This document shows positions 409-38,141 of a DNA stretch of 64,000 nt, one piece after another. Where the stretch lies: assembly GCA_904063045.1 (NCBI GenBank), contig CAJFCJ010000006.1:1315647-1379646 (forward strand). The letters run 5' to 3'. The notes under the pieces are model-generated. The model had not been told where the DNA came from and ran no database searches. It was given only the letters and a program-made list of their open reading frames with translations. The number at the start of each line of letters is the position of its first letter. Positions within the stretch are counted from its first letter, which is position 1. Position numbers and translations under genes: made by a program. This DNA comes from Dimorphilus gyrociliatus. Its lineage: Eukaryota; Animalia; Annelida.

Positions 409-1512
<1,104 letters not shown>

Positions 1513-2236: not shown

Positions 2237-2238
<2 letters not shown>

Positions 2239-2280
<42 letters not shown>
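2239..2280. repeat. (AT)n microsatellite
   Basis: Uninterrupted AT run of about 21 units. Confidence 0.95.
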
Positions 2281-2282
<2 letters not shown>

Positions 2283-2746: not shown

Positions 2747-3944
2747 TTAGACATTACTAGATAAATAATGACTTATTCTATATGGAAAGAGGGCATCATT
2801 AACTTCCATGTACCAACAGTTACTTATGTTATGCCTCACTGAGGTTAATGATAAATTTCCATTTACGCTGATGATTGCTTTACGACCCTTTGCTTCTTGA
2901 ACAGTTTTGTAGAATTTGAACAGGTTGTTTCCTATTCTCCCTAATAGGCCATCTATTCCTTCGTAAGTCGGATAGAATGCGTTTAAATTCATCGAAAAAC
3001 CTATAGAAGGATTATAATATCTATAAATTATTATGTTTTTTGTTATTCTATTTCTTGAAATGCTATCTTTGAGATTAATTTGAAGAGAATTTCCTGTAAT
3101 TTTTAAGATAAAACTCTTTCCCTCTATCTTTCGATCTTCGTTTAAATTATTCCATTCAAGGAAAATACCATCTTCCGATAGAGTTCCGGTACGATCAGAT
3201 GTTATATTACCATGTGGTGAGATAACTTTTATCGCTTTCATAAAATATTCATTCATCAATTCTCCGTATATAGATATATCTAAATCTTGAAGTTTAATTA
3301 TAAGTATTTGATCGCCTTCTCTTCCATTTATATCATAGCATATCATTTTTAACGATTTATCTTTTTCATCTTTAACAACTTGCTTAAAATGCTGACTTCC
3401 ACCGGACAAAGGATATTTATTCTGTAGGATGAAATGAACGCTTTCCGTTTTGTAAGCTCTTACAACCTCGTCAAAACACTCAATATGCACTGTTATTATT
3501 TTATCTCTTTCCAATTTATAACTATCAACAGCTTCTACAATGATATTATTTACAAGTCCATTACGAGAGATAGGAAACTTATCAATACATCCCTTAAGTA
3601 TTACTTCGGACGGATGAGAAACCTTAGCTCTAAAGATCGTAATCTTTATCAATAAAGTCAGATAATTTTGATATAAGATCTTTCTCACCTGCAAATTCCT
3701 TTTCCTTGTAGCGCTTCTACTGTGATCGACAAGCCAAATCCATCTCTCTTTAATATGGGCGGATCTGGTCTGGCAATATGAATATCTAATAATTGACTTG
3801 AGCATCCTCCTATAAACAAATAAACATATAATATTTCTAATATATGCAGTAATTGATTAATTTTATCATTTTGAACGGATATTTATACCAACTTGATACC
3901 AATATGATAAAGAGGCAAACAAGTGGGATATTCCTGTTAAGCAT
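2747..3944 (-). CDS. Secreted Calx-beta-like + ITIH-C-like protein, GSQH variant (family member G1)
   Basis: Three exons. Signal peptide MLNRNIPLVCLFIILVS (exon 1 donor a|gttggt, less certain). Exon 2 ends EALQGKGIC(R) at a phase-2 intron. Exon 3 has SGGSQHFKQ..MICYDINGREGDQILI..GLLGRIGNNLFKF..ISVNG..CWYM, aligning with the other members. Confidence 0.75.
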
Positions 3945-4347
3945 GGTATTATTTACACAAACTGATTGGTCTCAATAGTTGACTAAAGACTAAGTAAAAA
4001 AATACACGAGAATCTAGATCTCAAGGTAGAAAGATACTCAAGTTGTTTTTAATAATCTATAATATAAATATCCTTGTGCTATCTCTTTCTATTGCGTAAT
4101 ATTGTCGGCTTGAAACGACAAAGAGAGAATAGGAAAGTGGAAGAAAACGATGAAAATAAGGGACTCGAGGGGGGAGATGATTAAAAGCAAAGAAAAATAA
4201 TTTAGCTCTGGTAGTTTTTTATTTGAAAGAAAACGTCTAGAGGAAACTAGAACTACTTAAGTCTTTAAGGATCGGCCATACACCAAATTATACTATCGAT
4301 TAATCCAATTGTCTATTGTACTCAAGTTTGGTACGCAATGCTTTCTT

Positions 4348-5566
4348 TCAAGGTTCCCATTTAAGCAAAGATGACGAGAAATCTTCCAAATTTGATGGAT
4401 ATAAGGCATCATCAATATCAAACAGCCAACAACTTAATTCGTCTTTACTTTGTAGGGCACTTAACATTGTCTGACCGTTTACGTTAACCGCTATTTTGGA
4501 ACTATCAGTATCATCCTCTGCCTCCTCAGCTGTTCCGAAGAACACAAATTTATTATTACCAATTCTACCCAATAAACCTCCTAATCCTTCGTAATTAACC
4601 AAATGATTAAAGTTTATATCCAAGAAATATCCGGTTAGCGTGTGATATAATCTTTTTATAGTGAAATTCAAATTTTGTATACTATCATCCATATTTTTTA
4701 GTTCAATTGTTATGCTAGGTCCATTATAGATTATCGAATGAGTGTCTCGTTCAATTTTCTGTGGTTCTATCCTATTTGACCAATCAATAAAGAGGCCATC
4801 GCTAAATTTGGTTCCCTCTGTTGATGAAATGATATTTCCGTCCAAATAGGTTATTTTAATTAAGTGCATATAATTATCATCGATTAATTCTCCTTTAATG
4901 ATAGTTTTCGAAGAGTTTTGTGTTAAAATTTCAATATGATCACCGGCTTCTCCTGTAACGTCATAACATATTAGTTTTCTATCTTTGTTCGCCTCGTCAA
5001 AAACAGTTTGCACAAAATGCGGATCACCGGAGACAAACGTATCAAAACTTTCATAAATTAGGATTTCTTTCTGAGCTGTTCTAATGATATCTGTTCCAAT
5101 TTCCTTACAGATAACGAGAATTTCGAAAGTTTCCTTTTGACTTGCAATACCATTATCAAAAGCTTCGACGAGAATTCTATGAACTTTTTTATTCGGTTCC
5201 GATATATGAAAATTTTCTGTTACCCCATGAAATCTCACCTCATTTACTTCTGACGATTCTATTCTATAAGACACTATTAGCATATCTTACTTTGTTCATT
5301 ATAATACTTTTAAAATAATAATTACCTGCATAGACCTGAGCCTTCGAATGCTTCAATTATAATTATTCTTTTAGCACCACCTTTAATTACTGCGGGATGA
5401 GGGACAATATCCAGTTGAATTTTAAGTGGACGAGTTGCAGATTCTAGAGAACTTATTTCTATTAATGAAAAATACATAAATATGATATTATCTTTGAAAT
5501 AAGATTGAGCAATTATAACATACCAACTACTGCGTAGATAAATATACTCCAAAGAAATTTATTCAT
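4348..5566 (-). CDS. Secreted Calx-beta-like + GDPH + ITIH-C-like protein (G2)
   Basis: Exons 5566-5524 (MNKFLWSIFIYAVV), 5458-5326 (ends EAFEGSGLC) and 5263-4348, all GT-AG. SGDPHFVQ at 5028-5017, then LICYDVTGEAGDHIEI, DDNYMH, GLLGRIGNN and SCWLF. Confidence 0.85.
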
Positions 5567-6681
5567 AACTTTAGCTAGTTATTCTTCTACTGCAAGTCTT
5601 GTGATAAACTCTGATCTAAATTTGAACTCCTTTTAAGATAATATTGAATAATAGAAACTCAAGCTTTGAGTAACTACTCTCAAAGTAGATTCATTTCACT
5701 ATGGCTATGGCTTTAAAATAAAAAATAATATTTAATTTTCTGAAATGTCTAGCTTTTCCTTTTCCAAAAAGCAAAACAAAACTAGGCTTACTAGCCATAG
5801 TTCACTCCTTTTTATAGAGCATAAAGGAATTGATATATAAAAAGTGACAAATCTTTTGTTATGTAGAGAGCATAGGATAAATTATATTAAGAGAATCTAT
5901 AGATTCTCTTACGTCTTTCGTTGAATCTTTATTATCATCTTAATTAGAGTATCATTACTGGAAAATATTAGCTTTTTCATTAATTTTATTGTTGTATTGT
6001 ACACAATTTTAAGTACACTAACCCCATAAAACATTCTATAAAAAAAGATAGCTTTGCTAGTCGTCACATGCCAAGAGCAAGAAAAAATTGCCCCCTTCCC
6101 CGTTTGAACTAGTCTGAACCCGAATTTTTCGTTGAATAGAGCTAGTTTCTACTAGAATATATTGAAAAAACGTGATAAAAAACTAAGGTAGTTTATTTAC
6201 CTAGAAGAGAACTAATGTAATATACATAATATATAAATATATACAGTACATACTGTATATATATGAATAACCAGAAGCAACAGCTTTATACTTCATTTTA
6301 GTAGCGTTCTTTCCTATACAATATTAAATATTACCCTTAAAAGTCTATGACTTATTGATAGTATAAATGTCTTTTCAACTAGATGTCACCGCTAGCTTAT
6401 TAAGACAGCTAGCTTTGGAATAATTTGTTAAAAACTTAATGAAATTTATATATTTAATTGTCGAATAAAATTGTCTCATTAATAAGATATGTAGAGTTGT
6501 TAATACTAAATACGAATCTGATTTTCTCCTTTTTTATATATAAAAGTTACCAGAGAAGCTGCGTGTTAGATTAAACAAAAGAGTACGTGTCAACGTTCGC
6601 CTCGCCAGACAGAAGTTCTTCATTTGTTCTTTAGTTTCCTAGCTAAATTCATAAATATTCATTAGCAAATAAATTTTCAAA

Positions 6682-8557
6682 ATGAAATTATTCACCCTTA
6701 CGTTAATTCTCTTAGCAAAACTTGGTAAATTTATTATAATGTTATTTTCATTACTGTTAATAATATAATTATATATGTGTGATAGTTGCTGTATATTCTG
6801 AAAAGTTTGATGTTCATATGGAACTTCAGAATCAAATTGCTGAGAATGATAAAAGATTAGTCTTAAGAACTTGGCGTAAATCAGGAAGTGGCATTTGCTC
6901 GTAAATATTTTCATTATTTTCATTTATTCTTATATCTATAAACTGTATATGATAAAATTTTTAATGATGTTTGCTCTCTCCTAGTGTCTCTTCCTCGGTC
7001 CCTGATAGAATTTATGATATCCCGGAAGCTTATTTCACATTTAATAAAACCTTCAATCTGCATATAATGCCATTAAGCATTCCAGATAATGATATTAAGG
7101 GAGATGATGTAACTGTTACAATTTCCTTAGTATGCACTTGTGAAGCTTCGAATAAAAAAGTTACTTTTGAGAAAGAAGTATTTTTGAAAGACAATGATGC
7201 AACTGATTATTATTCTCCTTTTCAACTTGTACTCATATTCGTACCGAGAATACACGTACACACCAGTATCTCTATTAGCTTACCAAGTATTCAAGGTTCT
7301 GGTACATGTTCAATGAAGCTATCCGATTCAACCTACTTACTGTTGAAAGCAGAAGAGAATGATAAAATAGTCTTTGACGAATTTCAATGGAGACATCAAA
7401 CAATGCTAACAGCTGTGAATAACGATGGCTTAAAAGGACCAACAATTGTTACATTAAGCATTACTTGTACTGATTTTCGAAATAGACGATCTTCAAAATT
7501 TCACCAATCAATTACAGTTCTTCCCTTTGTAGACGAGACAAGTTTTCAGGAATTTTCACCACATATTGAAGTTCCGTTGGAAATCGAAGAAGATGGTGGC
7601 CGAAGAGGTGTAATGATATCGAGCTTTATTGGAAATGCTAATTGTAGTGCTGACATTAAAGATAAAGCGTACGCACACTTTCATGGTCCAAGCACGTACA
7701 CATACACTCAAAGTAGCATGAGTGAAATTTACGGCAATTTCTTAATAGTTGAGCCTGTCGATGATGATAAGTCTACGGGTGATAGAACTGTTACTGTTGA
7801 TTTAACATGTGTTGATTCAGCCAAGGAAATAATCTCAAATATACCTATAAACATACTAATCAGAGAGGATGATGAATTTGGATTGTCTTTAAGGGATGAT
7901 CCACACTTTGTTCAAATTATATTTGATGAGTTTAAAATGATAGAAAAGAAAGTTTGTTACGATGTTACAGGGAATTCTGGAGATTTAATTCAAATAATTG
8001 AACACGAGAAAAGCGGAACTGTGATGTTTGGAGAATTATTGGATGACTATTACATGCATATCGTTACTATAATTTCGCCATACGGAAATATTACAGCAAC
8101 TACAAAAGATATTAAACTATTTGGAGGATTAGTTTTACAATGGAATCCTTCAATGAGAAAACTAAAATATGAAGATAAAGATTATGAATATACTTTATAC
8201 AGAAATATTATTAAAATTAAAGTTAAAGAAATTGATGAGCAGCTATTGTTTGCTATTGAACGAATAAGTCATCTAAGTAGTGGCTATTATCTTGATACAA
8301 GAATTTTTGGCCTAAAGAATAACTATAAAGGATACGGAGGAATTCTCGGCAGAGTTGGCAATAATCGAATTAAATTTTTCGAAAATGTTCAAGAGAATAG
8401 CAGTAGAACAAGTATTGAAGTTAACGGACAGTTGTTTACATCTTCAATTATACATAGACAAGATAATGAATGTTGGTTAGTAAGCCTAAGCAATGCTTTA
8501 TATCCTTATTCAATTGATAATTTCATTTTTCCAAAAAACTCATTGGTAATCAATTAG
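6682..8557 (+). CDS. Secreted protein with three Calx-beta-like repeats + DDPH + ITIH-C-like domain (G3)
   Basis: Exon 1 MKLFTLTLILLAKL (ATG 6682). Exon 2 ends KSGSGICS. A large exon 3 runs to 8557. The repeats carry DNDIKGDDVTVTISLVC, NNDGLKGPTIVTLSITC and DDDKSTGDRTVTVDLTC. RDDPHFVQ at 7892-7915, then VCYDVTG, DDYYMH, GILGRVGNN and ECWLV. Confidence 0.85.
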
Positions 8558-8947
8558 AATGACCTAATTTTCATTGATAGTGAAATAAAAATTATGTTTT
8601 TTTGAATCATTTCCATTTTGATTTATGATCTAATATAGGTTTATATTTAGTAAAGTAGTTTAAAAGTTAATTAAAACTTTCCTTCTCCTTTAAAAGTAAG
8701 AAGACAGTTAGGAACTCTCATTAATATACTTTCACTTATTATCTAATTGCTCAAGTTAATATTTCCAAGCTAGTTAGACAGAATAATTAACAATCTCAGG
8801 CAAACAATGAACCTTCTAAGATAAAGTCTTTTCTTTAAATTAAAGCATTATATAATACTATTGTAATATTTAATTGATTGTACTTATATTCGCACTCGTT
8901 TAAACTTTGAAGGTAGACAGTCTTTGTTGAAGCTTTGAACAGGAGTC

Positions 8948-9796
8948 ATGTTCAATAAATATTATGCAGTTTTCTTCCCAGAGGAAAATTTAAATTCGAT
9001 TATTCCAGTAACGTGGATAACCTTAGAAGATAAGAAAATTTTGACCATGTGGCCGGAGGATCATATATATTATGAAGGTGGAGACAGAGATATAGATTAC
9101 CTTGCTAGAAATAATGTCAACCCTGCAGAAAATTCACCTGGATTATGGTCCTACTACGAAGCGGTTATACTACAGGGTTTTGGTAAGTGCAAACAAGTAG
9201 TTTGTTCAAGTCACACATTCTGATACTCTATTATTAGAAACTTACGAAGAAGCCGAAATCTACTTAGGCGCTAAACAGAAACAAAATAAAAAAGATAAAA
9301 GGAAAAAAGGTATATACTTGAATTTCCCTTATTTTCAACATTAAAACCCATCTTAATAGCCTCGAAGAAAATAACATTGAAACAAGCTTCGAATAGTTCA
9401 GATTCAGAGGATGTTGAACAAAAAGCTTACAAGAGGAAATCTGCTGAAAACTTAACTAAACGTAAAAGATACCGATCGGCAATTACACAGTGTACCTTAG
9501 AGGATGATGAATATCAACGTTCTCTTACATCGTTGAACAATAAATCTTCAAACTTCAATTCCTGTACTATGAATTGTCCACGTACAAATGCACTAACAAA
9601 CGCTAAGAAAGTCGGTCCTGTCAAGGCACTTCAGAGATTAAGTGGTCGAAAAAGAGCAAATAACGCAGATGATAATTCAACAGATAAAAGTAAAATAATT
9701 CAGAAGCTTTTTCAGGAGCAAATGAATCAAAAGAAAACCCTTGAAAGGATTCTCGAAAAATTGGCTGATATGGAAGATTTTAAGAATAAACCTTAG
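8948..9796 (+). CDS. Uncharacterised protein with a DUF4806-type N-terminal motif and a C-terminal coiled coil
   Basis: Exons 8948-9182, 9238-9309 and 9360-9796 splice in frame. The N-terminus YAVFFPEE..IIPVTWI..MWP..P..W..Y...IL..FETYEEA resembles the motif of DUF4806/BEN-associated, transposon-linked proteins (family assignment from recall). A basic NLS-like stretch follows. Confidence 0.6.
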
Positions 9797-10292
9797 CTAT
9801 TAGTATAATTAATTATTATATAATTATAATATTATATCCACCAGATGGCTTACAGTCAACTTTGACATGTTTCTCTTATTTTACGATAATTTTTATGTTT
9901 ACTAAAAGTCTTAAAAAGTAGTAAGATCGATTAGATTCAATAAATAATAGATACAAACAAGGAAATTACAAAGTTCATCTATAGTCATTCAATTAATAAT
10001 TTTCAACAATTGAAAGATACTTTCGTATAAAGTTCAATACATTAAGAAAATCATTGAGAAAAGAGAGTGACACTTTTCTATGATAACAATTAATAAGTAG
10101 TATCATTTCTTGTACATCAATACTTCCTTTTTTAACAAGAAACTACTACTTTTTGCGGGTTGTTTAGGCAGCAGACGCCCCTGTATCTATGACAGCATAG
10201 TAAACAACCGCTTCAACTCATTCGGCCTTACGGCGCTGAATGGAATAGTTGTTATATGATTCATACCAACGAATGGATAAACCTTGTTAAAA

Positions 10293-13200
10293 ATGCAATA
10301 TGAACGTTTAGTAATTTTGATTATCAGTATTATTCTAAGTTCAGTTGTCTCAATAAATGGTAATATACTTATAAATATATTATATCTACATCATATATTG
10401 TAATATATATAAAAGTAAAGACTTTTCTATAAAACATCTATGTCTGTCTTTTATATGAAATGCGTTCAGTTTCAAAACATTTCCTTTTTTATCCATTTTT
10501 TTCTCTTTCATTTCTTTCTTCTAGCAAAGAAAATTACCCAAATTCAAACCATCTTTACTTCGAACATCGTGGAAGGTCAAACGAGGAATGTTATAGAAGG
10601 AGATCTGAGTAGTTATCTTGTTGTACAACCAGCTTCTGGAACTCTTTCATGGATTACGCTAAAACTCTCCAATTTTGCTGTTATTAATAGAGTAATTGTG
10701 AAGAGGAGATTGTGTTGCGAAGGTATTCTTTATTTGTCTCTCTTACATCATACTGTATATTATAACTAGTCATCAAATCAACAGATCATATGGCGATATT
10801 TTCCGTTTCGATTGGAGATTCATTTTGTCAAAGTGATCCCAAATCTTTTCAACCATCAACTCAAGATTCATTGTGTTATTCATACAATTATGGAAGCACC
10901 AGTAATGTTCCTGAATCAGTGAATGAAACATGCTCAACATCTCTTCATTCAAGACCTCCTCTTGGAAATTATGTTACAATATTCAAAAATTCTCCTAGCA
11001 GAAATATACATTTAGCAGAGATTGAGATTTATGGAGAAATTCTATCAGGTTTGCAAACGTTTTTAAAGTGTATTTTATAATTATTTCGATGTTTGATTAA
11101 ATTTATTGAAGATATTACTCCACTCAAAGAAAATTATGTTTATGAAAAGAATGGAACAAGAGGTTATATTCTGAAGAGAGAGAAGAACAGCTTTTGGAAC
11201 GCAAAGAAAAAATGCGAAGACGATAATTCGTATTTAGCAATAAATTCTGGCAGTTTCTTAGCATCATATCTTCGGAGAGGTGAGTAGAATCTTCGTTTTC
11301 AAGTAGATAATAAGATATGAAAAGTGATATTGTTGTATTGTTTATTAAACAATAGAAATAAGTGAGAATAAGTTTTGGCGAAATGGACATTATTTCGACA
11401 ATAAATGGTATACCGCATCAGATTGTTCGCAAGAGTTAAGCTCTTTACCAAATGCAGTAAATTCACCAACAAATGATATGAAAATGTATTGGGATAGAGA
11501 TTTGAAATTGTATGGAGAGAATCCCAATCAACAATTCTATTACATTTGTGAAAGAGATTTACCGAATTCTGTATCGAATTGTCCTGATTATTGTGAATAT
11601 TGTGAAATATTTAATCGTAATAACATGGACTCGAGGTGCATTTGTGAAAATGGAAAATATGGAGTAAGATGTCAGTGGCGTAAGTATACATTGAATTTGA
11701 AATGTGAAGAGAAAAATGATTTAGAAATGAATGAAAATTTGTTGAATAGCTTGTTCGGGAAATTTTTATGGGGTTGATTGTAATATTGCGTGTGGAAACT
11801 GTAGAGGAGGATCAGCTTGTAATTCTGAAACTGGATTATGCTCTGGTGGTTGTGAAAATGGTTGGACAGGAGATAAATGTAATGAAGCTGTGACAACAGA
11901 AAGTACTATAGAAAGTACAGTTATAACAACAAAATTAACCTCTACAATCCGCCCATCTACATTGGCTCCCACAAAACCATCAAATAATTCTTTCAACTCG
12001 ACTATTGGTATGGTTTAATTATAGAGGCTTTAAGAAGTATTTTATAACGAAATTTCAGGTGATGGACCTACCGACAAAAACAAAATTGGACTGATAATTG
12101 GAGTGGTACTAGCAAGTGTTGTTCTATTTATTGCAATTGTTGTGGGTGTTGTATTCTGTTACAGGTAAATAATAATTATTCTACTACTAAGTAAAGTTAA
12201 GTTTTACGTTTATGTTTTAAGGATGAGAACTAATGGAAAAGCACATCCAGAAGCTGATATAGAAGAAAATATATCTGTAAAGGAAGATCAGTTGGAAACG
12301 GCCTCAGATCATGTTCCATCAGTGAATAATGATTCAATTATTAAAAATAGAAATTCGACAATTAATGATCGTGTATCAGGTAAAATGACTATTGTATTTT
12401 GTATGTGAAAATTGACTACATATGGTTTCTTTTCTAACAAATAATAGCCGCCTACGAAAATACACAGCATAGTATAAAGGTTGAAAATCTTGGTTCCGTA
12501 ATTGAAAGATTGTCGAAAGACGATCAAAAAGGTTTTCAAAATGAATTTTCGGTAATGAAACATTATTGTAATCGTATTATAAATATTAATTGCGTAATAA
12601 AATTAACAAGGAATTACCAAATGGACAAATCCACGAATGGAACGATGCATTGAGGGCAGATGTTAGGTCAACGAAAAAGAATAGATATAAAAATATATTC
12701 GCATGTTAGTATTAAAATTTATTTAAGCAGATAATGTTTTTTATATATTAAACTGATATTTACTTATATAACTATCTAAACTATACAAGATTAGGGTTAT
12801 AAAAATGGACTATGTTAAAATACCCATACAGACGATAAAACAAGAGTTGAAATTGAAACCGATGATGGAACGGATTATATAAATGCTAATTACATATCGG
12901 TTAGTTGTCAAGGCAATATTTATATTAATGTTTTCTATAAATTAATGAAGAATTAGCTAGTTCGTGACTGTTATGAATTAGTAATTTAACTTCCCTTTTT
13001 TTTCTTATAGGGCTACAACAAAAAGCAGACTTTCATAGCAAGCCAAGGTGGGTAGGCCGAACTATTGTAAAACATATTCTCCCATTTCATTCAGAGTGAT
13101 CAACTATTGCGCGGGGGTTGCAATAGAGAAATAGGGAGGCGGCATACTAATACTCTAGAAATACCAATATACTAATATCTAAAGTATTTGAGAAATGTAG

Positions 13201-15717
13201 TAATACCCTTGTTTCTTTCTTAAGGTCCAACTGATAATATGGTTAATGACTTTTGGAAAATGATTTGGGAGCATAAAATTCCCGTCATCATAATGGTGAC
13301 AAATTTATATGAAAATGGAACAGTGAGTTTTCCTTTTAAGCATATGCAAACATTCCATATTTTACTAATTCCAATATAAAAACTATTAAAACATTGATGT
13401 TGACAATGTACAGACGAAATGTGTGCAATATTGGGCAAACAAGGAAGAAGAGAGACCGAAAAATTTCGGTCCAATTTCCGTTCAATGTATAGGAGAAAAA
13501 GAATACCTTGATTATAAAATAAGAAATTTACAGGCCTATAAAGTAAACATGTTGAAAATTTAAGACTTTTTTTATAAATAATATTATTTGCATAAAAAAG
13601 GGAGAAGAGTCGAAAAAGGTTAAATTGTATCATTTTACGGGTTGGCCCGATTTTGGTGTTCCTTCTAGTCCATCATCATTATTGAATTTTATACAAACTA
13701 TTAGAAATGATAAGAGATTACATGACAAAACGGCAGTTATACACTGTAGTGCCGGGGTTGGTAGAACAGGAACTTTTATAGCTTTGCATACTCTTATGCA
13801 ATCAATCGAAGAAACGGGAAGTTTAAACGTCTTTCACACTGTGTTGTCACTAAGACAGGAAAGAGTTGCTATGGTTCAAAAAGAAGTAACCCTATTTTTC
13901 CTTTACATACTATAATAAAGGATATATTCACGACCAATTGTTCACCTTAAAATTTTTGTTATTTATCAACAGGAACAATACGCGTTCATATACAAAGCTT
14001 TGCATGAATATGTTCAATGTGGAAGAACAACATTCTCTGTCAATAAATTTCTTAAAAACCTACCACGTCTAAAAGAAAATCCACCTGGATTTAGCGAATC
14101 GCGAATCGAGAGACAATATGAGGTTATTATTAAACCTTTTCTATATTCGACATATTATATAAAATGCATTTTAAATAGATGGAACTTTTTTACTTTTTAT
14201 CAATCTATAGATGCTCAGCGCCCAAAAGGTTAAATTAACTGTTTCCATATGTCATTTGGGAATTGAAAATAGAGAATTGAATAGAAATCAGGACATTTTA
14301 CCAAGTTGGTTTAATAATTTATTCATAAAATTAAAATATCAAACCAGCCTATATTTTTATTTTTATACTGTTTAATATTCCTATACTGTATATATACTAA
14401 TATATATATATGTTTTTTTTTTCAAGTCGACCAATTTCGTCCTGAATTATCTCCGCTAGATGGCAGAAATACTTATATAAATGCCATATACGTTCCGGTA
14501 TGTTAGCTTTGTTATTTTTTTAATATAAATATGAATAATTTATTAAAACAATAATGATTTTAATATGCAGAATTTTGAAAAGTCAAAGTTTGTTGTTACT
14601 CAAATGCCCATACAAAGTACTAGAATCGATTTATGGCGTTTAGCCGACCAATGTAAATGTAATGTTATAGTTATGCTTAATCCTTTAGACGAAGATAACG
14701 ATGTAATTATTTTACATTATCCTTTCTTTATTAAATGTACTATTATTCCTTAAATTATACATTTCAGCTTGATTTTCCCTATTGGCCTGGAGAGAGCGAA
14801 GCTCTTGTAAGGGAGCTGGCTCCTTATAAGATTGAAAACGATAAACTTAGCCTTTCATTGGACTTGGAAAATGAGCATATAGTAGTTACGCAATTGCTTT
14901 TATCCAAAAGCACTGATGTAAATATTACATATTTTTTCAACTGTTTGTCTAGCATTAATTACAAATATTAATTTAATTTATTACTTAATTTTAGAAGACA
15001 ACCAGAGTGCCTAAAATAATTCGTCACGTAAGACTTACAAACTGGACAGATAAGAATGAAGTTCCTCCTGACATGACAACGTTCATAGATCTATTTGAAA
15101 TTGTTCGAAAATTAAATATGGATAGCACAAAACATAAAAGAATACTTATACATTGTTTGTAAGTGATATAGACAAGATTGAAAACGATAACGTATCATAA
15201 GTTATAAACTAAGATGGCAAAATTCTTGTTCTATATAGAGCATACTGTATATACTGTATATATACATTAGTATATATATTTATAGATAGATAGCTAAATA
15301 GATAGATAGATAGATAGACAGATAGATAGAGAGTAATCTTTCTATAATGATAACGACTTTATTATATTCGTATGCAAGTATGTTATATTAAATGGTTATT
15401 AATATTAATTTACAGAGATGGAGCGAAGAGGAGTGGCTTATTCTGCGCTGGCTTTGCCTTATTGGAAAAGATAATTAATGAAAAAAATGTTGATATTTTT
15501 CAAATCGTTCAACAAATTCAGCGTAACAGACCGCAATTTATTCAAAGTGTTGTAAGGAAAATTAATTACCTCATAGTTAATACATATACTAAACTAATTA
15601 TATAATTAATAGGAACAATACGCATTCCTCTATGAACTCGCCGCAACGTGGATAAAAAAACACAGTAACAAATCGGAAACCCAGTCATCTCATATCTATT
15701 CAAATGTCCAAAATTGA
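10293..15717 (+). CDS. Receptor-type protein tyrosine phosphatase: F-type lectin-like + CTL-like + EGF + TM + PTP D1 + D2 (receptor R1)
   Basis: About 22 exons. Signal peptide MQYERLVILIISIILSSVVSING. F-lectin-like domain (WITLKL..RRLCCE..GNYVTI..IHLAEIEIYG). EGF Cys patterns. TM IGLIIGVVLASVVLFIAIVVGVVFCY. D1 has KNRY, DYINANYI, FIASQGP, GWPDFGVP, IHCSAGVGRTG (13742) and MVQKEEQY. D2 has YINAIYV, VTQMP and IHCLDGAKRSG. TGA at 15715-15717. Confidence 0.92.
10415..11990 (+). repeat. Segmental duplication, copy 1 (copy 2 at about 19210-20785)
   Basis: Near-identical sequence at +8795, visible as duplicated ORFs 10440/19235, 10790/19585, 11093/19888 and 11478/20273. Confidence 0.95.
15282..15330. 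repeat. (GATA)n microsatellite in an RPTP intron
   Basis: Imperfect tagatagatag run. Confidence 0.85.
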
Positions 15718-16497: not shown

Positions 16498-16534
16498 TCT
16501 CTCCCTCTCTCTCTCTCTCTCTCTATCTCTCTCT
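16498..16534. repeat. (CT)n microsatellite
   Basis: Imperfect ctctctct run. Confidence 0.85.
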
Positions 16535-17093: not shown

Positions 17094-18216
17094 ATGTACA
17101 TATATGGCTTCCATTTTCCAGTGTGCCAGCGTAAAATATTTAGTTTCTTACTGTTTCTCTTGATTATTTTAGCATTTTGGGGATTATCTCTAAGTGAGTA
17201 TTACCTTAATCAATTAATTTACCATGCCTACTCTATTTTCAAAGCTGTAAAATCGTGTATTTTGTCTAGAAGGTCACGAACGTACGAGTAACAATTATAC
17301 TCCTAGACTTACAACAGTAAGTACACAAGTTCTTTTTGGCCTGTTTCATTAAGTTTTCTCTCTGCAGAAGGAAACTGTGGCGGCTAGATTACGTCAGCTG
17401 AAAGATGTTTGTTCGAAATCGAATGATCCTCATCCGATTGCCCTGACTAATTTATATGTACAAGAGAATTATAAGATTGTTTTTTGCCTAGTCCCAAAAA
17501 CAGCTAGTACCAATTGGAGAAAGATTCTAGTTAGTCTATCGCCCAGATTCTATCATTTGAGACCGTCTAATATCTCTTCGGAACTTCTCGATACAAAGGA
17601 AGCGAAGCAGGTGCTAAAACCTCTCGGAGAATATAAAAGCGAAGAAATTAGTACGTTTATGAACAATTATACGAAAATAATGTTTGTCCGACATCCTTTT
17701 GAGAGGCTTTTGTCGGCCTACAGGAATAAATTTGTCAAGACGTATACTAACTATTTTAGAAATCGTTTTGGCAAATTGATAGTTGCATATTTCAGACCAA
17801 ATGCTAGTCAGGAAGAAAAGGAAAAAGGAATTCCTACTTTTCTAGAATTTGTCTACTATTTACTGAATATTAGTTATATGCCGTTTAAGACTAACCCACA
17901 TTGGGATAGTATAAATAACATATGCTCACCGTGTACCATACAGTACGACTTTATAGGTCATTATGAAACTCTGATGGAGGATACAAAATATATTTTAGAG
18001 CATTTAAAATTACAAGATAAAATGTTGCCTTACAGTAGACGGAAGACTACTGAAAAAGAATGGCGTAGAGAATTTTGTAACACTCTTCATCCCATGCTTA
18101 TTGAAGAGTTAAAGGTATTTTATAGAAGAGATTTTGAACTTTTTGGTTATAATATATCTCATCTCACACAAGATAAACTATGCAAGGAACACGTCAACTC
18201 TTTACCATCGTCATAA
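17094..18216 (+). CDS. Golgi carbohydrate sulfotransferase, CHST11/12/14-like (Sulfotransfer_2 family)
   Basis: Exons 17094-17193 (type II TM anchor IFSFLLFLLIILAFWGLSL), 17270-17316 and 17368-18216. PAPS motifs VPKTASTNWRK and FVRHPFERLLSAYRNKF, plus HW, YDFIGHYETL and DFELFGY. Confidence 0.9.
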
Positions 18217-29629: not shown

Positions 29630-30095
29630 ATGAAGTTTCTTGTGGCTTGTATACTCGGTCTTGCTTTACTTTGTAAGTTAATTAAATTGTATTAGAATTA
29701 TTATAGATAATTAGTGAGCAAACTATTTCTTTTTTTCAATTTATAGGTGAAGCTAACTCCCTTCGTATAAAGGCAGACAAAACCACATTATATACTGGAG
29801 CTTTTGTACCAATTGAAGTAATACCCACAGTAACATTTCCTGTTCCTTGCATGTAAATATATATATATAGAAATCATAAAAATTTCAATAATTATCATAT
29901 GCATTTAAAAAAAACAGGTATAATTTTGCGCCTGCCGTGATGAATATGGCAGGAGGAGGAAGTCGTGGTCAGTTCTATATTTCTGGACAAACGCAAAAGT
30001 GGGTTTATAATATAGTACCCCATCATGGTCAAGTTACATTAAGAATGGTATGTGGACTTGTCGAAAGAGCAGAAATCACGTTTACATTTAATTAA
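29630..30095 (+). CDS. Small secreted stand-alone repeat protein of the GDPH family, 108 aa, not in the ORF track (G4)
   Basis: Exons 29630-29672, 29747-29852 and 29918-30095, with phase 1 then phase 2 introns as in the paralogues. MKFLVACILGLALLCEANSLRIK..VTFPVPC|MYNF..GQVTLRMVCGLVERAEITFTFN-stop. Confidence 0.75.
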
Positions 30096-30705
30096 CCATC
30101 ATTATATTTTGAGCGAAAAGTTAGTTGTATGTAACTTATGACATTGTAATAGTTGAATGTGCTGTGGTGGGATAAATATAATTAATAAACTGAATTATTA
30201 TGGTTCTTAAATTTTTGACTCTACAATGATAGAAAGAAAGTAGAATTAGCTAATAAATAATACCTTGATTTTTTCAAGATAATAGTTCTAATTAGGTTTC
30301 GCTATAAAAGCGATTGACTGCAAACACTTGCACAACAGTGCCGCTATATAATTCAATCGAGATATCGGCATTTGGGGGAAGTCTTATATATCATCTCTAT
30401 GATAAAGATAACTATCCCTTGATTCTGCTATTAGTTCTTACGAAGGAGGAAGATTTTGACGAATGCTTAGCTCATTTTTGTAATGTTCCTAAATTAACAA
30501 GATAAGGAATAATGCAGTAAATGGTGTTAACTAATCTAAAATTGATCATTTTACTTCTAAAAATAGATTTTAGATTTTGATGAAATGTCAAAATTTATTC
30601 TTCAGGCATCAGATAATACCAATGCAAAAACTAACAAATTTAACATAAATATTTCAAAATGTGCTTTCCATTGAACATTCAAAAAAAATAATAAATTTGT
30701 TCAAA

Positions 30706-31859
30706 TTACTTTGAAAATATGAAATTGCTTATTGGACGAGGATAAACAACATTTTCTGTATCCATCAACCAACAACTCAATCCTTCTCTTTGAATTTCTC
30801 TAGCCGTCGTGAAATAACCATTAACAACAACTGTTCCTCGAGAAATATTATCATCGCCTTGAACAGATTTGTAGAATTTAAATTTGTTATTTCCTACCAC
30901 TCCCAACAGCCCTTCCGAATTAGCATAGTTGACAAGACCTTCAACATTAACATCCAGAAAATGGCCTGTTACTTCATGGTCTGAACGTTTAACAATATAG
31001 TTAACTCCTCCAAACAATTCCTTGCTAAGACCAACTACTTCGACTGTATTACCAGCTTTTCTTACCATGCAAGCATTATTACGTTCAATGCTCATTCTCT
31101 TTGGATCACTAGTCCAGTCGAAAACAATTCTTTTGTTCAATCTAACTTCTTTTGGTGTAATTTCTACGTTGCATCCTTCAGCAGAAACGCGAATAATATG
31201 CATATAATAGTCATCCATCAATACACCTTCAATAGCCGAATTGGACTTTTTATCTTTGTAAATTTCAATGCGATCTCCAGCAACACCTTTAACATCATAA
31301 CACACTCTGTGAATCTTGCCAGTTGCAATATCTTTTACTGATTGAATAAAGTGAGGATCTCCTTCAATAGCATCTGGTCTAGGATCAGAAATATACTGAT
31401 GAAAGACTTTCTTCGCGCCCTTGCAAGCGAGAGTAATTTCAACAAAATGCGGCCCCTCAACAATACCGTCAGCAACAGCAGTAGCTATTACTATCACTTC
31501 TGAACCTAAAGGTGATACTACTGCCGGGGCGGAAAGTGTCAATTGGGCAGGGTTGTTTACTGACAAACTAAAATAAAGCGAACATTTAATTTTCAATATT
31601 AAAATAAATGATAAAGACTTACGTGCATGCAAAGGCGTTAGCTGCATTGGGAACAATTCCTTTCGAGAATCTGAGTTCTCCAGAACTTCCTTCTGGTATG
31701 GTGAAAAATTCGTGCTGGACATTAGGTAGAGCTCCATAACAGCACGCTAATCCCAAAACTAAATAGGAAAAATGTAAAATTAAACAAATAATCGATATAA
31801 TACAAATTATAGACATTACCAAAGCTAATTGCTACTAGTTCACTGCTGTGGAAACTCAT
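30706..31859 (-). CDS. Secreted Calx-beta-like + GDPH + ITIH-C-like protein (G5)
   Basis: Signal peptide MSFHSSELVAISFVLGLACCYG over exons 1-2. Exon 2 ends NAFACT. Exon 3 has AVADGIVEGPHFVEITLAC, EGDPHFIQ (31362-31351), VCYDVKG, DDYYMH, GLLGVVGNN and SCWLM. Confidence 0.85.
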
Positions 31860-32600
31860 TTTCAACGGCCAAAATGAAAATGAACGCTGTAGAAATGTTC
31901 CAATATTTATAGACGATTTTTAAGATGAGTAGAACTCAAAGAAATTAAATTTGGAAAACAATACGTCAAAGTTTTATATTCTGGACAAACACAAAAAGTA
32001 CTTTTTTTTATAGAGTTGTTATTAAAAGTGATTGAGCCGACCATTTTTTTTATAATATACTGTATTGTTTTAAATTATTTGTGATAGAATATAGGTTAAA
32101 GTTAAAGTTGTTCTAGAGCCTTATATTTTGGACAGAACAACGTGTCAAGTGATAGAACTAGACAAAAACAGTTACAGTTTTTCTTTTCCATAAACAGCAG
32201 ATTTTGAAAAATACTGATATTATAATAAACATACAAACGCATAACAAAGATAGAGAAAGCTCGAAGGGAGAGAGAGAGTTATTGACTAATTAATTAATGT
32301 AAAGACTTTCTACACTTTCTTTTTGTGTACAATTGAATTGTTTCTTTGGATTTATAACGGTTATAATTTGATATACTGTATGCTCTATATTACTTTAACT
32401 AGATCACTATTTCCCCATCTTCTCCAATCAACACTTCTGTCTTTAAGAGTTCAAAGATACACGTGTCACACAGTGTTCTGTATTTAGGTCTAAAAAAAAT
32501 AGACATAGCTCAAGAGATGTTTTTTTCGTAAGTATTAAAAAATTTATGGCGTTTTTTTTGGAGTTTTACACGTGTTATATTTTTTATGTAGATATTTTAT

Positions 32601-32635
32601 TATAAATAGCAGACAGATTTCAGTGATCGTCATTC
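32601..32635 (+). promoter_or_regulatory. TATA box and initiator of G6
   Basis: TATAAATAG at 32601 and TCATTC with its A 31 nt downstream (32632), 26 nt before the ATG at 32658. Confidence 0.4.
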
Positions 32636-32657
32636 CACCTCCAGTAGTTGATCCAAA

Positions 32658-33793
32658 ATGGAAATCTTCAAGACTGTTTTCTTCTTCGTTTTTGTACTTT
32701 GCCGTAAGTTTGATAATTTAAAATGTATTTATATTAATTTTATATTTTAAAATGTTATATTTAATCAATAGAACTCTGCTATGCTGCTGATGTACTTTCT
32801 GTTGATTGTCAACCACCATCAATAGCGGAAGGTACTGAAGGAATGATTATTGTGCAAAAGCTTATTCCTGACTCACCATTAAGATGCTCGTAAGTTATTT
32901 TCATAAGATTTTTGATTAAATTTGATATAAATTCAACAAATTTTTGCAGAGTTACCGTCCTACCACCAAATAAAGTTACAGCGAATGTACAACAATTGAC
33001 TTTGAATAACAATGGTCAAATCGCCTTCAAAATTAATGTTATACCTGATGGCAAACCTGGAGATTATGAAGCAGTACTTATCATTTCTTGCGATGGACAG
33101 CCAGTCTTCACTAAAAAAATACCAGTTATTAGTACTGATTCAATTGTTGAAGGTGATCCTCATTTCTCGCAACTTATTGTTGATAGGCAAACTGAACAAA
33201 TCGAGAGAATATGCTATGATGTTAGTGGTAAATCTGGTGATTATATTGAAATCTATACACATCAACCAACCAAAACTTACGTTTATGGTCAATTGTTGGA
33301 TGATTACTATATGCATATTATCAAAATCTTTTCAACTCTTGGCAATGTTACCGTGTCTACGAAACATGTCAAGTTTAACAACGAGGTATTATATGCATGG
33401 GAAGAATCGAACGATATTAGACTTTACCACAGAGGCGGATATATGATAAAAATCGATGATAATTCTGTTACTGTCGAAGTTGTCAATAAGGAGGACATGA
33501 CATTCAGAGTTACAAGATCGAAACATCCAGTTACTGGACATTATTTGGATTTTGGTGTATTTGGAATGTTAAAATATGATAATGTTGATGGTTTACTTGG
33601 ACGTATTGGAAATAATTTGTTCAAGTTCTATGACTTTGTTCAAACGGAAGACAACACAAAAAGAGGCACAATCTTGATAAATGGCCATTTTGCGGTCGCT
33701 TCAAAGAAATCAAAATCAAATAGTTGTTGGCTAGTTGATGTAAAAGATGTTTTACACCCTTATTCTATTACTGATTATATTCTTAGAAATTAA
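32658..33793 (+). CDS. Secreted Calx-beta-like + GDPH + ITIH-C-like protein, 335 aa (G6)
   Basis: Exons 32658-32703, 32772-32889 and 32950-33793. MEIFKTVFFFVFVLCQLCYA, PDSPLRC|S, EGDPHFSQ (GDPH at 33152-33163), ICYDVSG, DDYYMH, GLLGRIGNN and SCWLV. Confidence 0.88.
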
Positions 33794-34862
33794 TGGTGTA
33801 ATTATTGAATTTAGTGGAAGTTGTTTCTTTGATGACCTAATGTTAGAATTTGTTAGTTTTGCATCAAATTATTGATGTTAAAAGAATGAATTTTGTCATA
33901 AATAAAATATTTATTGTTTAAAAATTAAATTATCTTAGTTGATTTATCTATTGCGCAACAAAAAAACACATAGCGGTTTGCTTAAAACTATCGAAAAATA
34001 TGTAGACGAGATGACGCTTAAGCTAAATTGAATAGAGATATTTACAGCTTGATGTGCGTTTAGTCTATATATATTTAATAAGAACTTATTGCATGTTATA
34101 GATTTTGAACAAAACGAACAATCTTGACAGTAGTTATAGTATATAAATTTAGTTGAAACATAGACAAAAGTGTCTTTAAAAGTTCTATTACACGTTACAA
34201 GCGTTTGACAAGAGTCCTTAGGTATTATCTTTAGTGGTTAGAACTTTAATGTTTTTCATATAAACTATCTTCTCTAAATACGCATACATACATTTTGAAT
34301 TCAATCTATAAGGGAAGAGCAAATGATTGGGCTAGTGATAAGGCTAGTGCTAATATAGACTATAGTACATACAACGCTTAAATATGTATATAACAACCAG
34401 TCGGTGTTTTCATATTACGGGAGCAGAACAATCTTTCCTCTCTAGTAAGCATGTTTAACCTTCAACAGTAAAGGGTGTAATATATAGATAAGAATTAACG
34501 AAGAACTATGATGATAAGTTCAAGTCACACTTTTTGTTATACATTACTGATACATTTCGCATGATAGATCTACAAAGTAGGAAATTTAAAGGTATGACAT
34601 ATAGTCTTAATTTAAATATTGAACTAGAAAAATTAATGTTAGCCTAAATGAAAGAGGTTTTTTCATCGTCTCTTTTCAAGTACACCTTTGAGAAACAAAC
34701 AAGATAGACTTGTTTTTGAGATCTATCATAAAAGATTTTTTCCCGAGTTGCTAGACATAAATAAGTAAACAGACTGAGTAGAATCAGAGGAAAATTTTTG
34801 ATATAAATAGGAGCAACTTTCAGTATGTGACATCCCGTCATTTCATTTGATATCGAGATAGA

Positions 34863-35361
34863 ATGTCTGCAGTTAAAGTTTTTTCACTTTTCGCCGTCAT
34901 ACTTTTCGGTAAATAATACTTTGATGTTTAAATAGAAATATATCATTCTAATCTAATTAAATACATTTTATATTTGTAAAGAACTCGTAGCATTGTCGCA
35001 CCAGACGGACTTTGTTACTTTAGAATTCACTAAACAAAGCATTGGACCTGGAGAAAAGACAGATTTGATAATAACACCTACATATGAAGCTCCATTTACT
35101 TGCCGGTATGTGATTTCTTTATTTTAATAGTTATTCTTATATATACAACCAAATTTCTTATGCAGAATATATGAGACTTCCGATCGAATTTCTTGCTCAA
35201 CGCAATCGGTCAACTTTAACAATAGAGAATCCGTTGCCCTAAGTGTTGTTCAATCGAAAGAAGAGACTCATCAAATTGAAGAAGTCGCAATAACTGTATT
35301 TTGCTCCAACGACGAGGTAGATTTGGGATCAGTCTCTATAGGCCTTACTTGTCATCCTTAA
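34863..35361 (+). CDS. Small secreted stand-alone repeat protein of the GDPH family, 121 aa, not in the ORF track (G7)
   Basis: Exons 34863-34908, 34982-35105 and 35166-35361. MSAVKVFSLFAVILFELVALS..YEAPFTC|R..EEVAITVFCSNDEVDLGSVSIGLTCHP-stop. Confidence 0.75.
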
Positions 35362-35936
35362 ATATTGTTCAGCTTAGAAAATAGCAGTTATTCAATTGTC
35401 TAAATTGTAAAACATTGAATTGTTTTCTTTGAATAAGAATGTGTTAAAATTTGTTAGTTTTCGCATCATTTTTTTGATGTCAAAAGAATAAATTTTGTCC
35501 TAATAAATAAATAATTTAACATCGTTTACTTATAAACTATTTCTCTTCAGTATTAATTATCAATTTAATAGGTCAACTAGTTAATAATTTTTAAAGAGAA
35601 TATTAATGAGCTTGGATTGATTTGTAGCTAACATACTACTCTTTTTTTTTGCCAAAATTCAAAACGCTATAACACTAGTTTGGTTGTTATTAAATTGAAA
35701 TAATTAGGTCAAAAATGATTTTTATATCAAAGCTAATACATCGACCTGTTAATTAAAAAAGCAGACTAAATTTAAGATATGCCAATTTTTTTTTATTTTC
35801 CTATATACTCTTGTTAAAAATGATGCTGAGCAATTGTTGAGCAAACAGAGCAAATCCAACTCAAAATACTTATGTAATATACAGTATATACTGTTTATCA
35901 GTCACCTTACCACATCTATAACTCAACAATTTCAGC

Positions 35937-37458
35937 ATGAATCTGTTGAAAAGACTTTTATTTATGTTTAGCTTTATAAGAAATATAATTTTTAAAATGT
36001 TTACATTCTAATAAATATTTAAGTTCCTCCTTCGAAATTTTTAGAACTTGTTGAATCATTCCAACATGAACAAACTCCAATTAGTTCCGTCATAGAGGGT
36101 GAGACTACTGAGGTCATTTTTACAATTGAAGCTAACGATCTATTGGACTATGGAATGGCAACGTATGTCTTATTACGTAAATTTGTAATAGTTTAAAGTT
36201 TAACGCTTATTCTTTTTTAGTTTTTAATAAGTGCTGATAATGAAGTTCTTGTGATTTTGCCATCTGATCCGATAAATTTCCATTATATCGGCGAAACGGC
36301 TCAAGTTGTAATATCAGTATTGGATGATGACATAGCAGTGCAAGGTGCTTCAAGCACTGTAACTTTTACAGTTTCAAGTATTTCGGGAAATGTTCTCGAA
36401 ACGGAATTTATAATATATGACAATGATCTTCCACTTACCCCTGTGGGATTTCCAACGGAAATGACTGAGGGAGATAAGCCTGTAGTAATTAGTCTAAAGC
36501 CTGACAGCCGGTGGGATGGTGGCTTTCACAAGTACTTGCTTGTAAGTTTGAAATATTTCGAAAAATTACTCTATTTTATTCTTATTTATATATGTTCGAA
36601 TTTAGTCCACCCGATCAAGTTGACATCTATGAACAAAATCCTGTAGTCGTTCCACCTAATAAGATCACTAATATACGAATTCAAGCTATTTATGATGCTG
36701 TAGAAGTAGAACCTCCTATAGACGTTACTGTAACAATTAGATGTCCTTGGAACTATACAAAAGTGTCGCACACTTAGAAAATAACTCTTCTTGATAAAAA
36801 TGGAGGGAGTTTAGGAGACCCTCATTTCACCCAATTTGTTGTTGATAGTCGAACAGGAAAATCTATGAGAATATGCTATGATGTTACTGGTGAGGCAAAC
36901 AATCGTATTTTCATCTATAAACATCTCCAATCAAAAACTTCACTTTACGGTACACTTAAGAACGACTATTATATGCACGAAATTACTGTTGGTTCGTTGG
37001 TCAGTAATATAACGGTTACAACCAATTATATCAAAATAGATCATGATAGAAAGTTTGAATGGAAAACTTCCGGTGGTTTTGAATTAACAAAAAGTAAATA
37101 TTATATTATTAAGTTTACTAAAAATGTTACTAAAATTGAGTCAACTGACGGAAGATTTGGAAATGTAAAATTTGAAATAAGAAGATCAATGTCTAATTTC
37201 AAAAACGTTTATTTAGACGTTAATATATTAAGATTAAATAATTACAAAGGAATAGGCGATTTACTAGGAGAAGTCGGAAATAGCCGTTTTGAATTTTATA
37301 CATCTGTCGCAGAGTATGAGGGAGAAGGAATGGGATCAATAAAAGTGAACAATCATCTATTCTTAGCTACTCAAAAAAAGCGAAACGGTATGGATTGTTG
37401 GTTGATTGATGCAGATGATGTTGTTTATCCTAAACAATTGGAGAATTTTGTTTATTAG
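35937..37458 (+). pseudogene. Probable pseudogene of the GDPH family: two repeats + GDPH + ITIH-C-like domain (G8)
   Basis: The signal exon MNLLKRLLFMFSFI is followed by GAAATA rather than GT at 35980. An in-frame TAG at 36775-36777 lies 12 codons before GDPHF (36814). The downstream domain is intact (ICYDVTG, NDYYMH, DLLGEVGNS, DCWLI). Confidence 0.65.
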
Positions 37459-38106: not shown

Positions 38107-38141
38107 ATAATATTAGCCTAGCAGACAGCCGCAAATGAAAA

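Follow-up and report, generated by a model that had tools for sequence, protein, structure and literature searches.

To our knowledge, covalent esters between proteins and glycosaminoglycans are known essentially from one system, the ITIH heavy chains on the chondroitin sulfate of bikunin, from which the heavy chains are later transferred to hyaluronan. Here we analyse a 64,000-nucleotide stretch of the genome of the annelid Dimorphilus gyrociliatus (contig CAJFCJ010000006.1, positions 1,315,647 to 1,379,646; hereafter the window, in whose own numbering all positions are given) that carries a tandem gene family probably encoding small secreted, self-cleaving pro-proteins, each of which would shed a tail of the ITIH type. 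In the described systems, autocleavage at a GDPH motif yields a C-terminal Asp anhydride, which can undergo hydrolysis or be trapped by a hydroxyl or an amine (PMC8267560). In ITIH3 the Asp is esterified to C6 of a GalNAc in the chondroitin sulfate of bikunin (PMC8267560); ITIH coupling requires the C-terminal propeptide, and low pH triggers the cut (PMC8267560, citing Thuveson and Fries, and Kaczmarczyk). The GDPH motif of ITIH3, ITIH5 and ITIH6 lies in an unannotated VWD-like sandwich (PMC10880436). The two fragments of FCGBP are joined by a Cys located five residues before the Asp (PMC8267560). In the sponge aggregation factor MAFp3/p4, arrays of Calx-beta domains are followed by an Asp-Pro-containing, VWD-like "wreath" domain without a tethering Cys, for which ITIH-like cleavage and glycan binding have been proposed in a comparison with VWD, RGM and ITIH (PMC11670116).

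The window contains eight paralogous loci in two clusters, A to C (2.7–8.6 kb) and D to H (29.6–37.5 kb), in DNA of 31% G+C with short introns. Six of the loci end in a C-terminal domain (C-domain) headed by GDPHF or a variant of it; the other two, G and H, are cargo-only paralogues. The loci are listed below, with the exons of each given from first to last.

Gene A, 2747..3944, minus strand: exons 3944-3893, 3806-3689 and 3629-2747; about 350 residues, with a signal peptide, one Ig-like repeat and a C-domain (2750-3400) headed by GSQHF, without Asp-Pro.
Gene B, 4348..5566, minus strand: exons 5566-5524, 5458-5326 and 5263-4348; 363 residues, with a signal peptide, one Ig-like repeat, GDPHF and a C-domain (4351-5028).
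Gene C, 6682..8557, plus strand: exons 6682-6724, 6786-6900 and 6985-8557; 576 residues, with a signal peptide, three Ig-like repeats and DDPHF.
Parts of gene C, plus strand: repeat 2 at 7205-7540, repeat 3 at 7541-7894 and the C-domain at 7895-8554.
Locus G, 29630..30095, plus strand: exons 29630-29672, 29747-29852 and 29918-30095; 108 residues, with a signal peptide and one short beta-rich domain, no C-domain.
Gene D, 30706..31859, minus strand: exons 31859-31820, 31746 (annotated 31759)-31623 and 31567-30706; about 341-345 residues, with one Ig-like repeat, GDPHF and a C-domain (30709-31362).
Gene E, 32658..33793, plus strand: exons 32658-32703, 32772-32889 and 32950-33793; 335 residues, with a signal peptide, one Ig-like domain, GDPHF and a C-domain (33152-33790).
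Locus H, 34863..35361, plus strand: exons 34863-34908, 34982-35105 and 35166-35361; 121 residues, with a signal peptide and one Ig-like repeat, no C-domain.
Gene F, 35937..37458, plus strand: exons 35937-35979, 36045-36162, 36221-36541 and 36606-37458; about three repeats, GDPHF and a C-domain (36814-37455).

Six-frame translation searched with a hidden Markov model (HMM) of the C-domain identified exactly six copies in the 64 kb (E-values 1e-72 to 1e-84), each of about 215 residues and each within a final exon that runs to a stop codon. Pairwise identity among these copies is 29–41%, so the duplications are old, and this identity together with the HMM E-values places the family relationship far beyond chance. 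The loci also have a common exon plan. Exon 1, which was enumerated at all eight loci, consists of 13–17 hydrophobic-rich codons plus one nucleotide and is followed by a phase 1 intron. Exon 2 spans 106–133 nucleotides and ends two nucleotides past a Cys codon, leaving phase 2, with the exception of gene F, where this Cys is absent; locus G has the same exon phases as the other loci, and its exon 2 also ends after the Cys. Exon models were built for all eight loci, with three exons each except for the four of gene F; complete open three-exon models were obtained for five of the six C-domain genes. Splice junctions were placed from sequence and annotation for A, B, C, D and G, and additionally from RNA contigs for E, H and F. 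The exon 1 donor of gene A (GTTGGT) is weak. Gene D corresponds to the annotated DgyrCDS4498 (P0013), and the product of gene E is identical to DgyrCDS4499 (open reading frame (ORF) 32894-33790, 100% match).

These models agree with a first-pass annotation made from the letters of the window, which had described eight loci in two clusters with a signal-peptide exon, a phase 1 intron, a short exon ending at or near a Cys and a phase 2 intron. Its counts of one to three repeats per gene and of six loci with a C-terminal domain were recovered, and its motif string (ICYDV, DDYYMH, GLLGRIGNN, VNG and CW) corresponds to the alignment consensus. It had also stated that the proteins have no VIT or vWA domain, and the N-termini, which comprise 100–330 residues of Ig-like repeats, indeed gave no VIT or VWA match. 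The GDPH site that it described as common to all six is exact in four of them (GDPHF in B, D, E and F); gene C carries DDPHF and gene A the degenerate GSQHF.

The fold of the C-domain was analysed using an AlphaFold2 (AF2) model of the gene E copy, which covers 213 residues, is based on a 14-sequence alignment and leaves the strand before GDPH outside the model. The model is all-beta, with a predicted local distance difference test (pLDDT) score of 88 and a predicted template-modelling (pTM) score of 0.84. In an exhaustive structural alignment the top 19 rows were all of the VWD fold, and the next, unrelated row scored Z 5.6. Z-scores of 12.4 to 9.3 were obtained for 17 VWD-fold entries; the matches comprise MUC5B (Z 12.4 over 144 residues, 2.9 Å), VWF (12.1), FCGBP D10 (11.9) and RGMB (8.5), and the rows also include MUC2, Cypridina luciferase and vitellogenin. 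Foldseek returned MUC5AC, MUC2 and VWF as its best rows (E-value 3.5e-3, probability 1.0). When the predicted-structure Atlas was searched by shape, the nearest matches were ITIH2 (template-modelling (TM) score 0.80, 202 of 213 residues aligned), an ITI_HC_C-only cluster (0.74/0.75) and an ITIH3-like entry (0.71), with generic VWD clusters reaching only 0.50–0.65. The Atlas's own model of the protein gave a TM score of 0.84 to ITIH2 (204 residues); in these ITIH comparisons both sides are predicted models. The top two language-model neighbours were likewise ITI_HC_C clusters (0.93, with 186–190 of 256 features in common). In a Pfam scan of 89 family domains, ITI_HC_C (PF06668) was the sole family to match three or more members (five, with a best E-value of 2.9e-4), and VWD (PF00094) was absent among the matches at E-values up to 10. 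All the ITI_HC_C matches fall short of the threshold, and the five members concerned do not include any window copy; one of the five, P0110, was located in a scan of ten divergent members, and its match is colinear, with residues 49-151 against profile positions 26-134 of 189, and scores 16.1 bits where the gathering score is 27 bits. By Foldseek and structural alignment, the AF2 model matches the ITI_HC_C/VWD-like fold named in the first-pass annotation. The predicted structure supports a VWD/ITIH-C fold nearest to ITIH C-termini, and the best explanation is that the C-domain would be homologous to, though diverged from, the C-terminal propeptide of ITIH heavy chains, which is itself a sandwich of the VWD type.

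The same structural alignments provide a position for the motif. The chain range aligned with RGMB opens at its residue 169, which we take to be the first residue after the cut, against residue 3 of the model. For FCGBP D10 (8qci_B) the aligned range opens at model residue 3 (Pro3) and chain residue 4081; the motif of this domain is G4079-D4080-P4081-H4082, and the D4080A/N and H4082N substitutions block its cleavage (PMC10880436). The worm motif is thus in register with the first residue after the cleaved FCGBP bond, as a positional check that uses the first and last residues of the aligned range and is not a residue-level superposition. Across the 89 domains Asp2 is conserved in 80, Pro3 in 84, His4 in 79, Gln7 in 82, Cys21 in 88 and Cys192 in all 89; Asp-Pro is kept in 80 of the 89 and missing in nine. 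We consider it unlikely that GDPHF is only a structural turn in a lineage-specific family of secreted beta-sandwiches that undergo no autoprocessing and resemble ITIH and VWD through a common fold. Such an explanation would accommodate the sub-threshold Pfam family matches and the nine domains without Asp-Pro, but it does not account for the retention of D, P and H in about 90% of copies despite 17–41% overall identity, nor for an aligned range that opens at the motif Pro and at P4081 of a solved, cleaved structure (PMC10880436). In addition, the Asp-Pro bond is cleaved in every family so far tested, namely MUC2, MUC5AC, FCGBP, RGM and ITIH (PMC8267560, PMC10880436).

Outside the window the family is large. 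A profile search of 1.84 billion protein representatives identified 191 clusters at 50% identity, 147 of them with E-values of 1e-10 or lower. At least 20 of the clusters represent annotated D. gyrociliatus proteins encoded on several contigs (17 identified by name, three more by exact window match; P0095 by its assembly), and the remaining clusters are transcript-like contigs. One of the homologue runs is an oyster RNA-seq data set (SRR24058836, Crassostrea gigas, PMC10416452), and its homologue could stem from an epibiont. In 65 proteins the domain is located at the extreme C-terminus behind unlike N-termini, which include Ig-like repeats as well as C-type-lectin-like and lamin-tail-like domains; the cargo matches to Pfam are sub-threshold (Lectin_C, E-value 0.014, profile positions 2-105 of 107; LTD, E-value 0.061). 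The amplification of the module that had been proposed from the window alone therefore extends to at least 20 proteins of this genome, with various N-terminal domains that Pfam supports weakly. Exactly two Cys residues are found in 63 of 91 C-domains, and the 12 residues that precede the motif are free of Cys in all six window genes. Ten members have a Cys directly before it, as C-x-D-P-H (P0075, P0077, P0084, P0085, P0088, P0094, P0123, P0137, P0139 and P0145). The N-terminal domains of this sub-branch look different, and it may represent a disulfide-tethered subtype nearer to VWD/RGM behaviour. The gene model of P0063 (DgyrCDS14435), located elsewhere in the genome, combines a MULE transposase, a FLYWCH zinc finger and part of the GDPH C-domain (profile positions 2-62), probably as the result of either a transposon insertion or the merging of models.

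An alignment of 33 N-terminal repeats revealed two near-invariant Cys residues and acidic motifs. Repeat 3 of gene C was modelled by AF2 (pLDDT 86) as an Ig-like sandwich, whose structural matches were PapD-like chaperones and the CEP192 ASH domain (Z 10.4), MSP (9.8), and the Calx-beta domains NCX1 CBD1 (9.6), CALX-CBD1 (9.1) and integrin beta4 (8.7). The NCX1 CBD1 alignment covers 105 residues at 17% identity, the joint highest identity among the top 50 rows. Foldseek placed PapD-like chaperones first for this repeat, and the Ig-like domain of gene E was nearest to CARDB, FixG_C and Cep192_D3 clusters. The Pfam Calx-beta profile (PF03160) matched none of the 33 repeats at E-values up to 10, and none in the long paralogues. 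Similar to NCX1 CBD1/2 and integrin beta4, the repeats are seven-strand Ig-like sandwiches of about 100–115 residues with acidic motifs near the last strands, whereas their two conserved Cys residues are not a Calx-beta feature. Since Calx-beta ties structurally with the PapD-like, ASH and MSP folds and has no Pfam match, we rejected it as the specific identity of the repeats. Of the Calx-beta-like assignment made at first pass, the acidic DD..EG and I.D.D motifs and the beta-sandwich hold; on the predicted structure, the label is allowed but not specific.

The first cluster is conserved in a second AT-rich species. The 13.6-kb contig L011 (positions 1-13618, Logan, SRR23372229; 29% G+C) is syntenic with window positions 400-8600 and contains a Forkhead gene and then, with order and orientation preserved, the orthologues of A (P0031), B (P0021) and C (P0023). 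In the window, the Forkhead-domain gene corresponds to positions 762-1584 (minus strand) and has two exons (E-values 1e-17 and 8e-13); its position next to the cluster is kept in L011. We located the orthologous exons by tblastn and codon comparison and calculated Nei-Gojobori (NG86) proportions. Coding DNA is 68–77% identical, and amino-acid identity is 51–54% for A, 59–61% for B and 39% for C. Within gene C the repeats are 32% and the C-domain 49% identical to P0023, the motif of which is ADPHF. The pN values of 0.25–0.40 compared with pS values of 0.63–0.79 for A, B and C (0.28 and 0.63 for gene A) indicate purifying selection on all three genes. The motif of the gene A orthologue P0031 is SSQHF, so the loss of Asp-Pro in gene A is old, has been tolerated, and occurred before the split of the two species; the two genes represent an ancient form that lacks Asp-Pro.

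Evidence for transcription came from spliced contigs of two public RNA runs, X1 and X2, and, as these are contigs, depth cannot rank the genes. The X2 contigs are spliced and identical to the window; the type of this run is unrecorded. X1 is a 2024 coral-tank metatranscriptome with 95–99% identity to E, H and F (window 31900-37480), and from this identity its source is a close relative of D. gyrociliatus living in that coral sample or aquarium. For gene E the RNA contains the junction 32889>32950 (GT..AG), and the loose ends at 32772 carry sequence that agrees with the end of exon 1. Locus H shows junctions 34907>34981/2 and 35104>35165 and has its own 3' end near 35507 (contig 35344-35507). 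The junctions 36162>36221 and 36541>36606 of gene F are present in an X2 contig. Both E and H are covered by spliced contigs in the two independent runs.

Two annotated genes disagree with these models. DgyrCDS4491 (608 residues; window 2747-5566) fuses gene B to gene A, its first two exons agreeing with our model of B. DgyrCDS4500 (476 residues; window 34863-37458) splices locus H into exon 3 of gene F via another donor and removes an in-frame TAG together with a conserved strand. Based on the exon models and RNA junctions, we rejected both as true genes in favour of separate genes. Gene F itself does not form a single open frame in its RNA contig. The donor of its exon 1 is GA; across RNA-supported junctions, exon 2 leaves phase 2 where phase 0 would be required by the open frame of exon 3, and exon 3 leaves phase 0 where the last exon needs one more base; and an in-frame TAG is located at 36775-36777, 12 codons before GDPH. 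The C-domain ORF is intact (36778-37455, 226 codons). On account of the frame breaks and the TAG, gene F was rejected as a clean fourth multi-repeat gene. In X1 two nucleotides are inserted behind 36502 and the junction differs, which adds 14 nucleotides net and would preserve the frame between exons 3 and 4 in this relative. The break therefore looks strain-specific, and gene F appears to be decaying in this strain. We regard it as very improbable that the cluster as a whole consists mostly of decaying duplicates with few functional genes, the self-cleaving device being an impression at the level of annotation. The two frame breaks, TAG and GA donor of F, the loss of the motif in A, the truncated forms G and H and the annotated fusions of neighbours are what such decay would produce. 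However, in a second species A, B and C are found intact, in synteny and under purifying selection, E and H have spliced RNA in both runs, and five of six C-domain genes retain complete open models.

Based on these features we propose that the products comprise a signal peptide, one to three Ig-like repeats with two conserved Cys each as a variable cargo, about 10 residues, GDPHF, and a tail of about 215 residues. In the secretory pathway the Asp side chain would attack its own peptide carbonyl, as in VWD, RGM and ITIH proteins, and break the Asp-Pro bond; from the motif and fold we judge this cleavage to be probable. The C-domain would then most likely be shed as a propeptide, as in ITIH, and would not stay tethered as in mucins and RGM. 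The absence of a Cys within 12 residues upstream and the mostly two-Cys tails favour release, although we regard this step as evenly balanced. The cargo would keep the new C-terminal Asp, transiently as an anhydride, which would be either hydrolysed or trapped by a glycan hydroxyl, for example of chondroitin sulfate. If trapped, the cargo would be anchored covalently in matrix, mucus or cuticle. This coupling of cargo to glycan is a further step that we put forward tentatively.

Several features of this proposal follow the ITIH heavy chains. These provide the nearest fold (202–204 of 213 residues aligned), the nearest language-model features and the sole recurrent Pfam match; in addition, in both families DPHF marks the N-terminal edge of a domain that closes a secreted precursor and has no tethering Cys shortly before it. 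Each family also includes a paralogue without the cleavage motif, gene A in the worm. ITIH4 lacks the cleavage consensus and is not known to be linked to bikunin. The worm proteins differ in having no VIT or vWA, in carrying one to three Ig-like repeats, or lectin- or LTD-like cargo in paralogues elsewhere, in a sequence similarity below every Pfam threshold, and in being encoded by at least 20 genes of one small genome. With the VWD domains of MUC2, MUC5AC, MUC5B, VWF and FCGBP and with RGM the C-domain shares the same beta-sandwich (Z 12.4 to 8.5) and a GDPH in the structural register of the cleaved FCGBP D10 bond, so that the chemistry should be the same. Unlike in those proteins, the worm domain is terminal and not embedded, has no C8, TIL or E partners and, in the window genes, no interfragment disulfide; TM scores to VWD clusters are lower, and Pfam VWD and RGM_C are unmatched.

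A number of observations weigh against cleavage, shedding and coupling as proposed. The terminal ORFs of the six window genes have no Pfam ITI_HC_C match at E-values up to 1, and the VWD and RGM_C thresholds are also unmet. Profile searches of PDB sequences with 14 and with 89 domains were fruitless, giving only a chance 14-3-3 match on ICYDV, and the 89-sequence family profile retrieved only family members, and no ITIH fragments, at E-values up to 10. At the level of sequence profiles, formal Pfam membership in ITI_HC_C is not supported; the earlier designation of the C-domain as an ITIH C-terminal domain is upheld by the fold (TM 0.80–0.84 to ITIH2) and not by the window copies, which lack a Pfam ITI_HC_C or VWD match. 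The gene A lineage is conserved under selection without Asp-Pro, which is likewise missing from nine of 89 domains, and G and H do without the C-domain; hence either the module has a role free of cleavage, or the cargo has one free of the module. The tail is better conserved than the cargo (49% vs 32% in gene C), and non-covalent retention of the tail would be compatible with a model that starts at the motif. We know of no acceptor, either a bikunin-like protein or a defined glycan, in D. gyrociliatus. Finally, the anhydride of FCGBP is simply hydrolysed, no adduct having been found (PMC8267560), and cleavage of FCGBP D10 stabilises the domain and gives protease resistance, which may be its sole purpose (PMC10880436).

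Some of these points also suit a different explanation, in which the tail is a structural or binding VWD-like domain, any cut only stabilises it, and the parts stay together through a shared beta-sheet. The product would then be a soluble adhesive or lectin-like matrix protein without covalent chemistry. We consider both this retention and this kind of product less probable than shedding, if well short of negligible. The stabilised, protease-resistant D10 domain (PMC10880436) and the hydrolysed anhydride without detectable adducts (PMC8267560) of FCGBP speak for it. The fold equals VWD at Z 12, purifying selection on the gene A lineage implies value without cleavage, and the degree of conservation of the gene C tail is odd for a throw-away propeptide. 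On the other side, the ITIH C-termini, which are shed, are clearly closer in structure (TM 0.80–0.84, against 0.50–0.65 for VWD), the window genes have no interfragment Cys and no C8 or TIL partners, and the domain is the last in the chain behind interchangeable N-termini. We accordingly prefer the reading of pro-proteins with a shed, ITIH-type tail.

The sponge aggregation factor is comparable in that its genes are tandem, secreted and clustered, and the release of the tail favoured here is also proposed for the wreath domain (PMC11670116). It differs in that the wreath is reported to be demosponge-specific and not to align with ITIH or VWD (PMC11670116), and in being huge, with 8–29 Calx-beta domains compared with one to three repeats in the worm; this comparison is based on the published description only.

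Two neighbouring genes were also identified in the window. An intact carbohydrate sulfotransferase ORF lies between the clusters at 17353-18213 (plus strand; Sulfotransfer_2, E-value 8.6e-50). It belongs to the chondroitin/dermatan/HNK-1 family, a curiosity beside the chondroitin-sulfate acceptor of ITIH, with no sign of a functional link. A MORN-repeat protein is encoded in a long single exon at 38139-39629 (plus strand; E-value 8.6e-38) and has an acidic low-complexity C-terminal half; the stretch in which it lies is locally richer in G+C (0.38).

A literature search found no paper on both Dimorphilus gyrociliatus and inter-alpha-trypsin inhibitor, and the sole match for ITI_HC_C/PF06668 was a study of mouse Itih4 in atherosclerosis. 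The first-pass annotation had taken the architecture to be undescribed. We found no paper describing it, but it is not wholly unprecedented, the sponge aggregation factor being closest (PMC11670116). We read the family as an autoprocessing module of known type placed in a new setting that is both minimal and amplified. New here are the syntenic A-B-C cluster in a second species, the old loss of Asp-Pro in gene A, the frame break of gene F and the annotation fusions.

Taken together, the family suggests a portable device that would cut proteins and perhaps anchor them covalently. More speculatively, the ITIH propeptide might be an autonomous "cut-and-couple" cassette that has been shuffled behind unrelated secreted domains (Ig-like, C-type-lectin-like and lamin-tail-like) in dinophilids and perhaps other spiralians, with each cargo joined by an ester bond from its new C-terminal Asp to sulfated glycans in mucus, cuticle or matrix. 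We think this doubtful in its full extent; if true, it would amount to a general protein-to-glycan ligation system, of which the vertebrate inter-alpha-inhibitor would be one specialised remnant and the sponge aggregation factor possibly another. The minimal natural form, a 100-residue Ig-like domain followed by GDPH and a tail and free of VIT and vWA, would provide a far simpler substrate with which to ask if the propeptide alone suffices for cleavage and transesterification, and the cluster supplies natural controls in gene A, which has no Asp-Pro, and in G and H, which are cargo only. The family bridges vertebrate ITIH, the VWD domains of mucins and RGM, and the sponge wreath domain, which suggests that the combination of an Ig-like array and a shed Asp-Pro sandwich predates each of these systems and is more widespread. 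If cleavage is purely hydrolytic, these genes would still represent a new family of secreted pro-proteins that has expanded within the lineage of a miniature model annelid.

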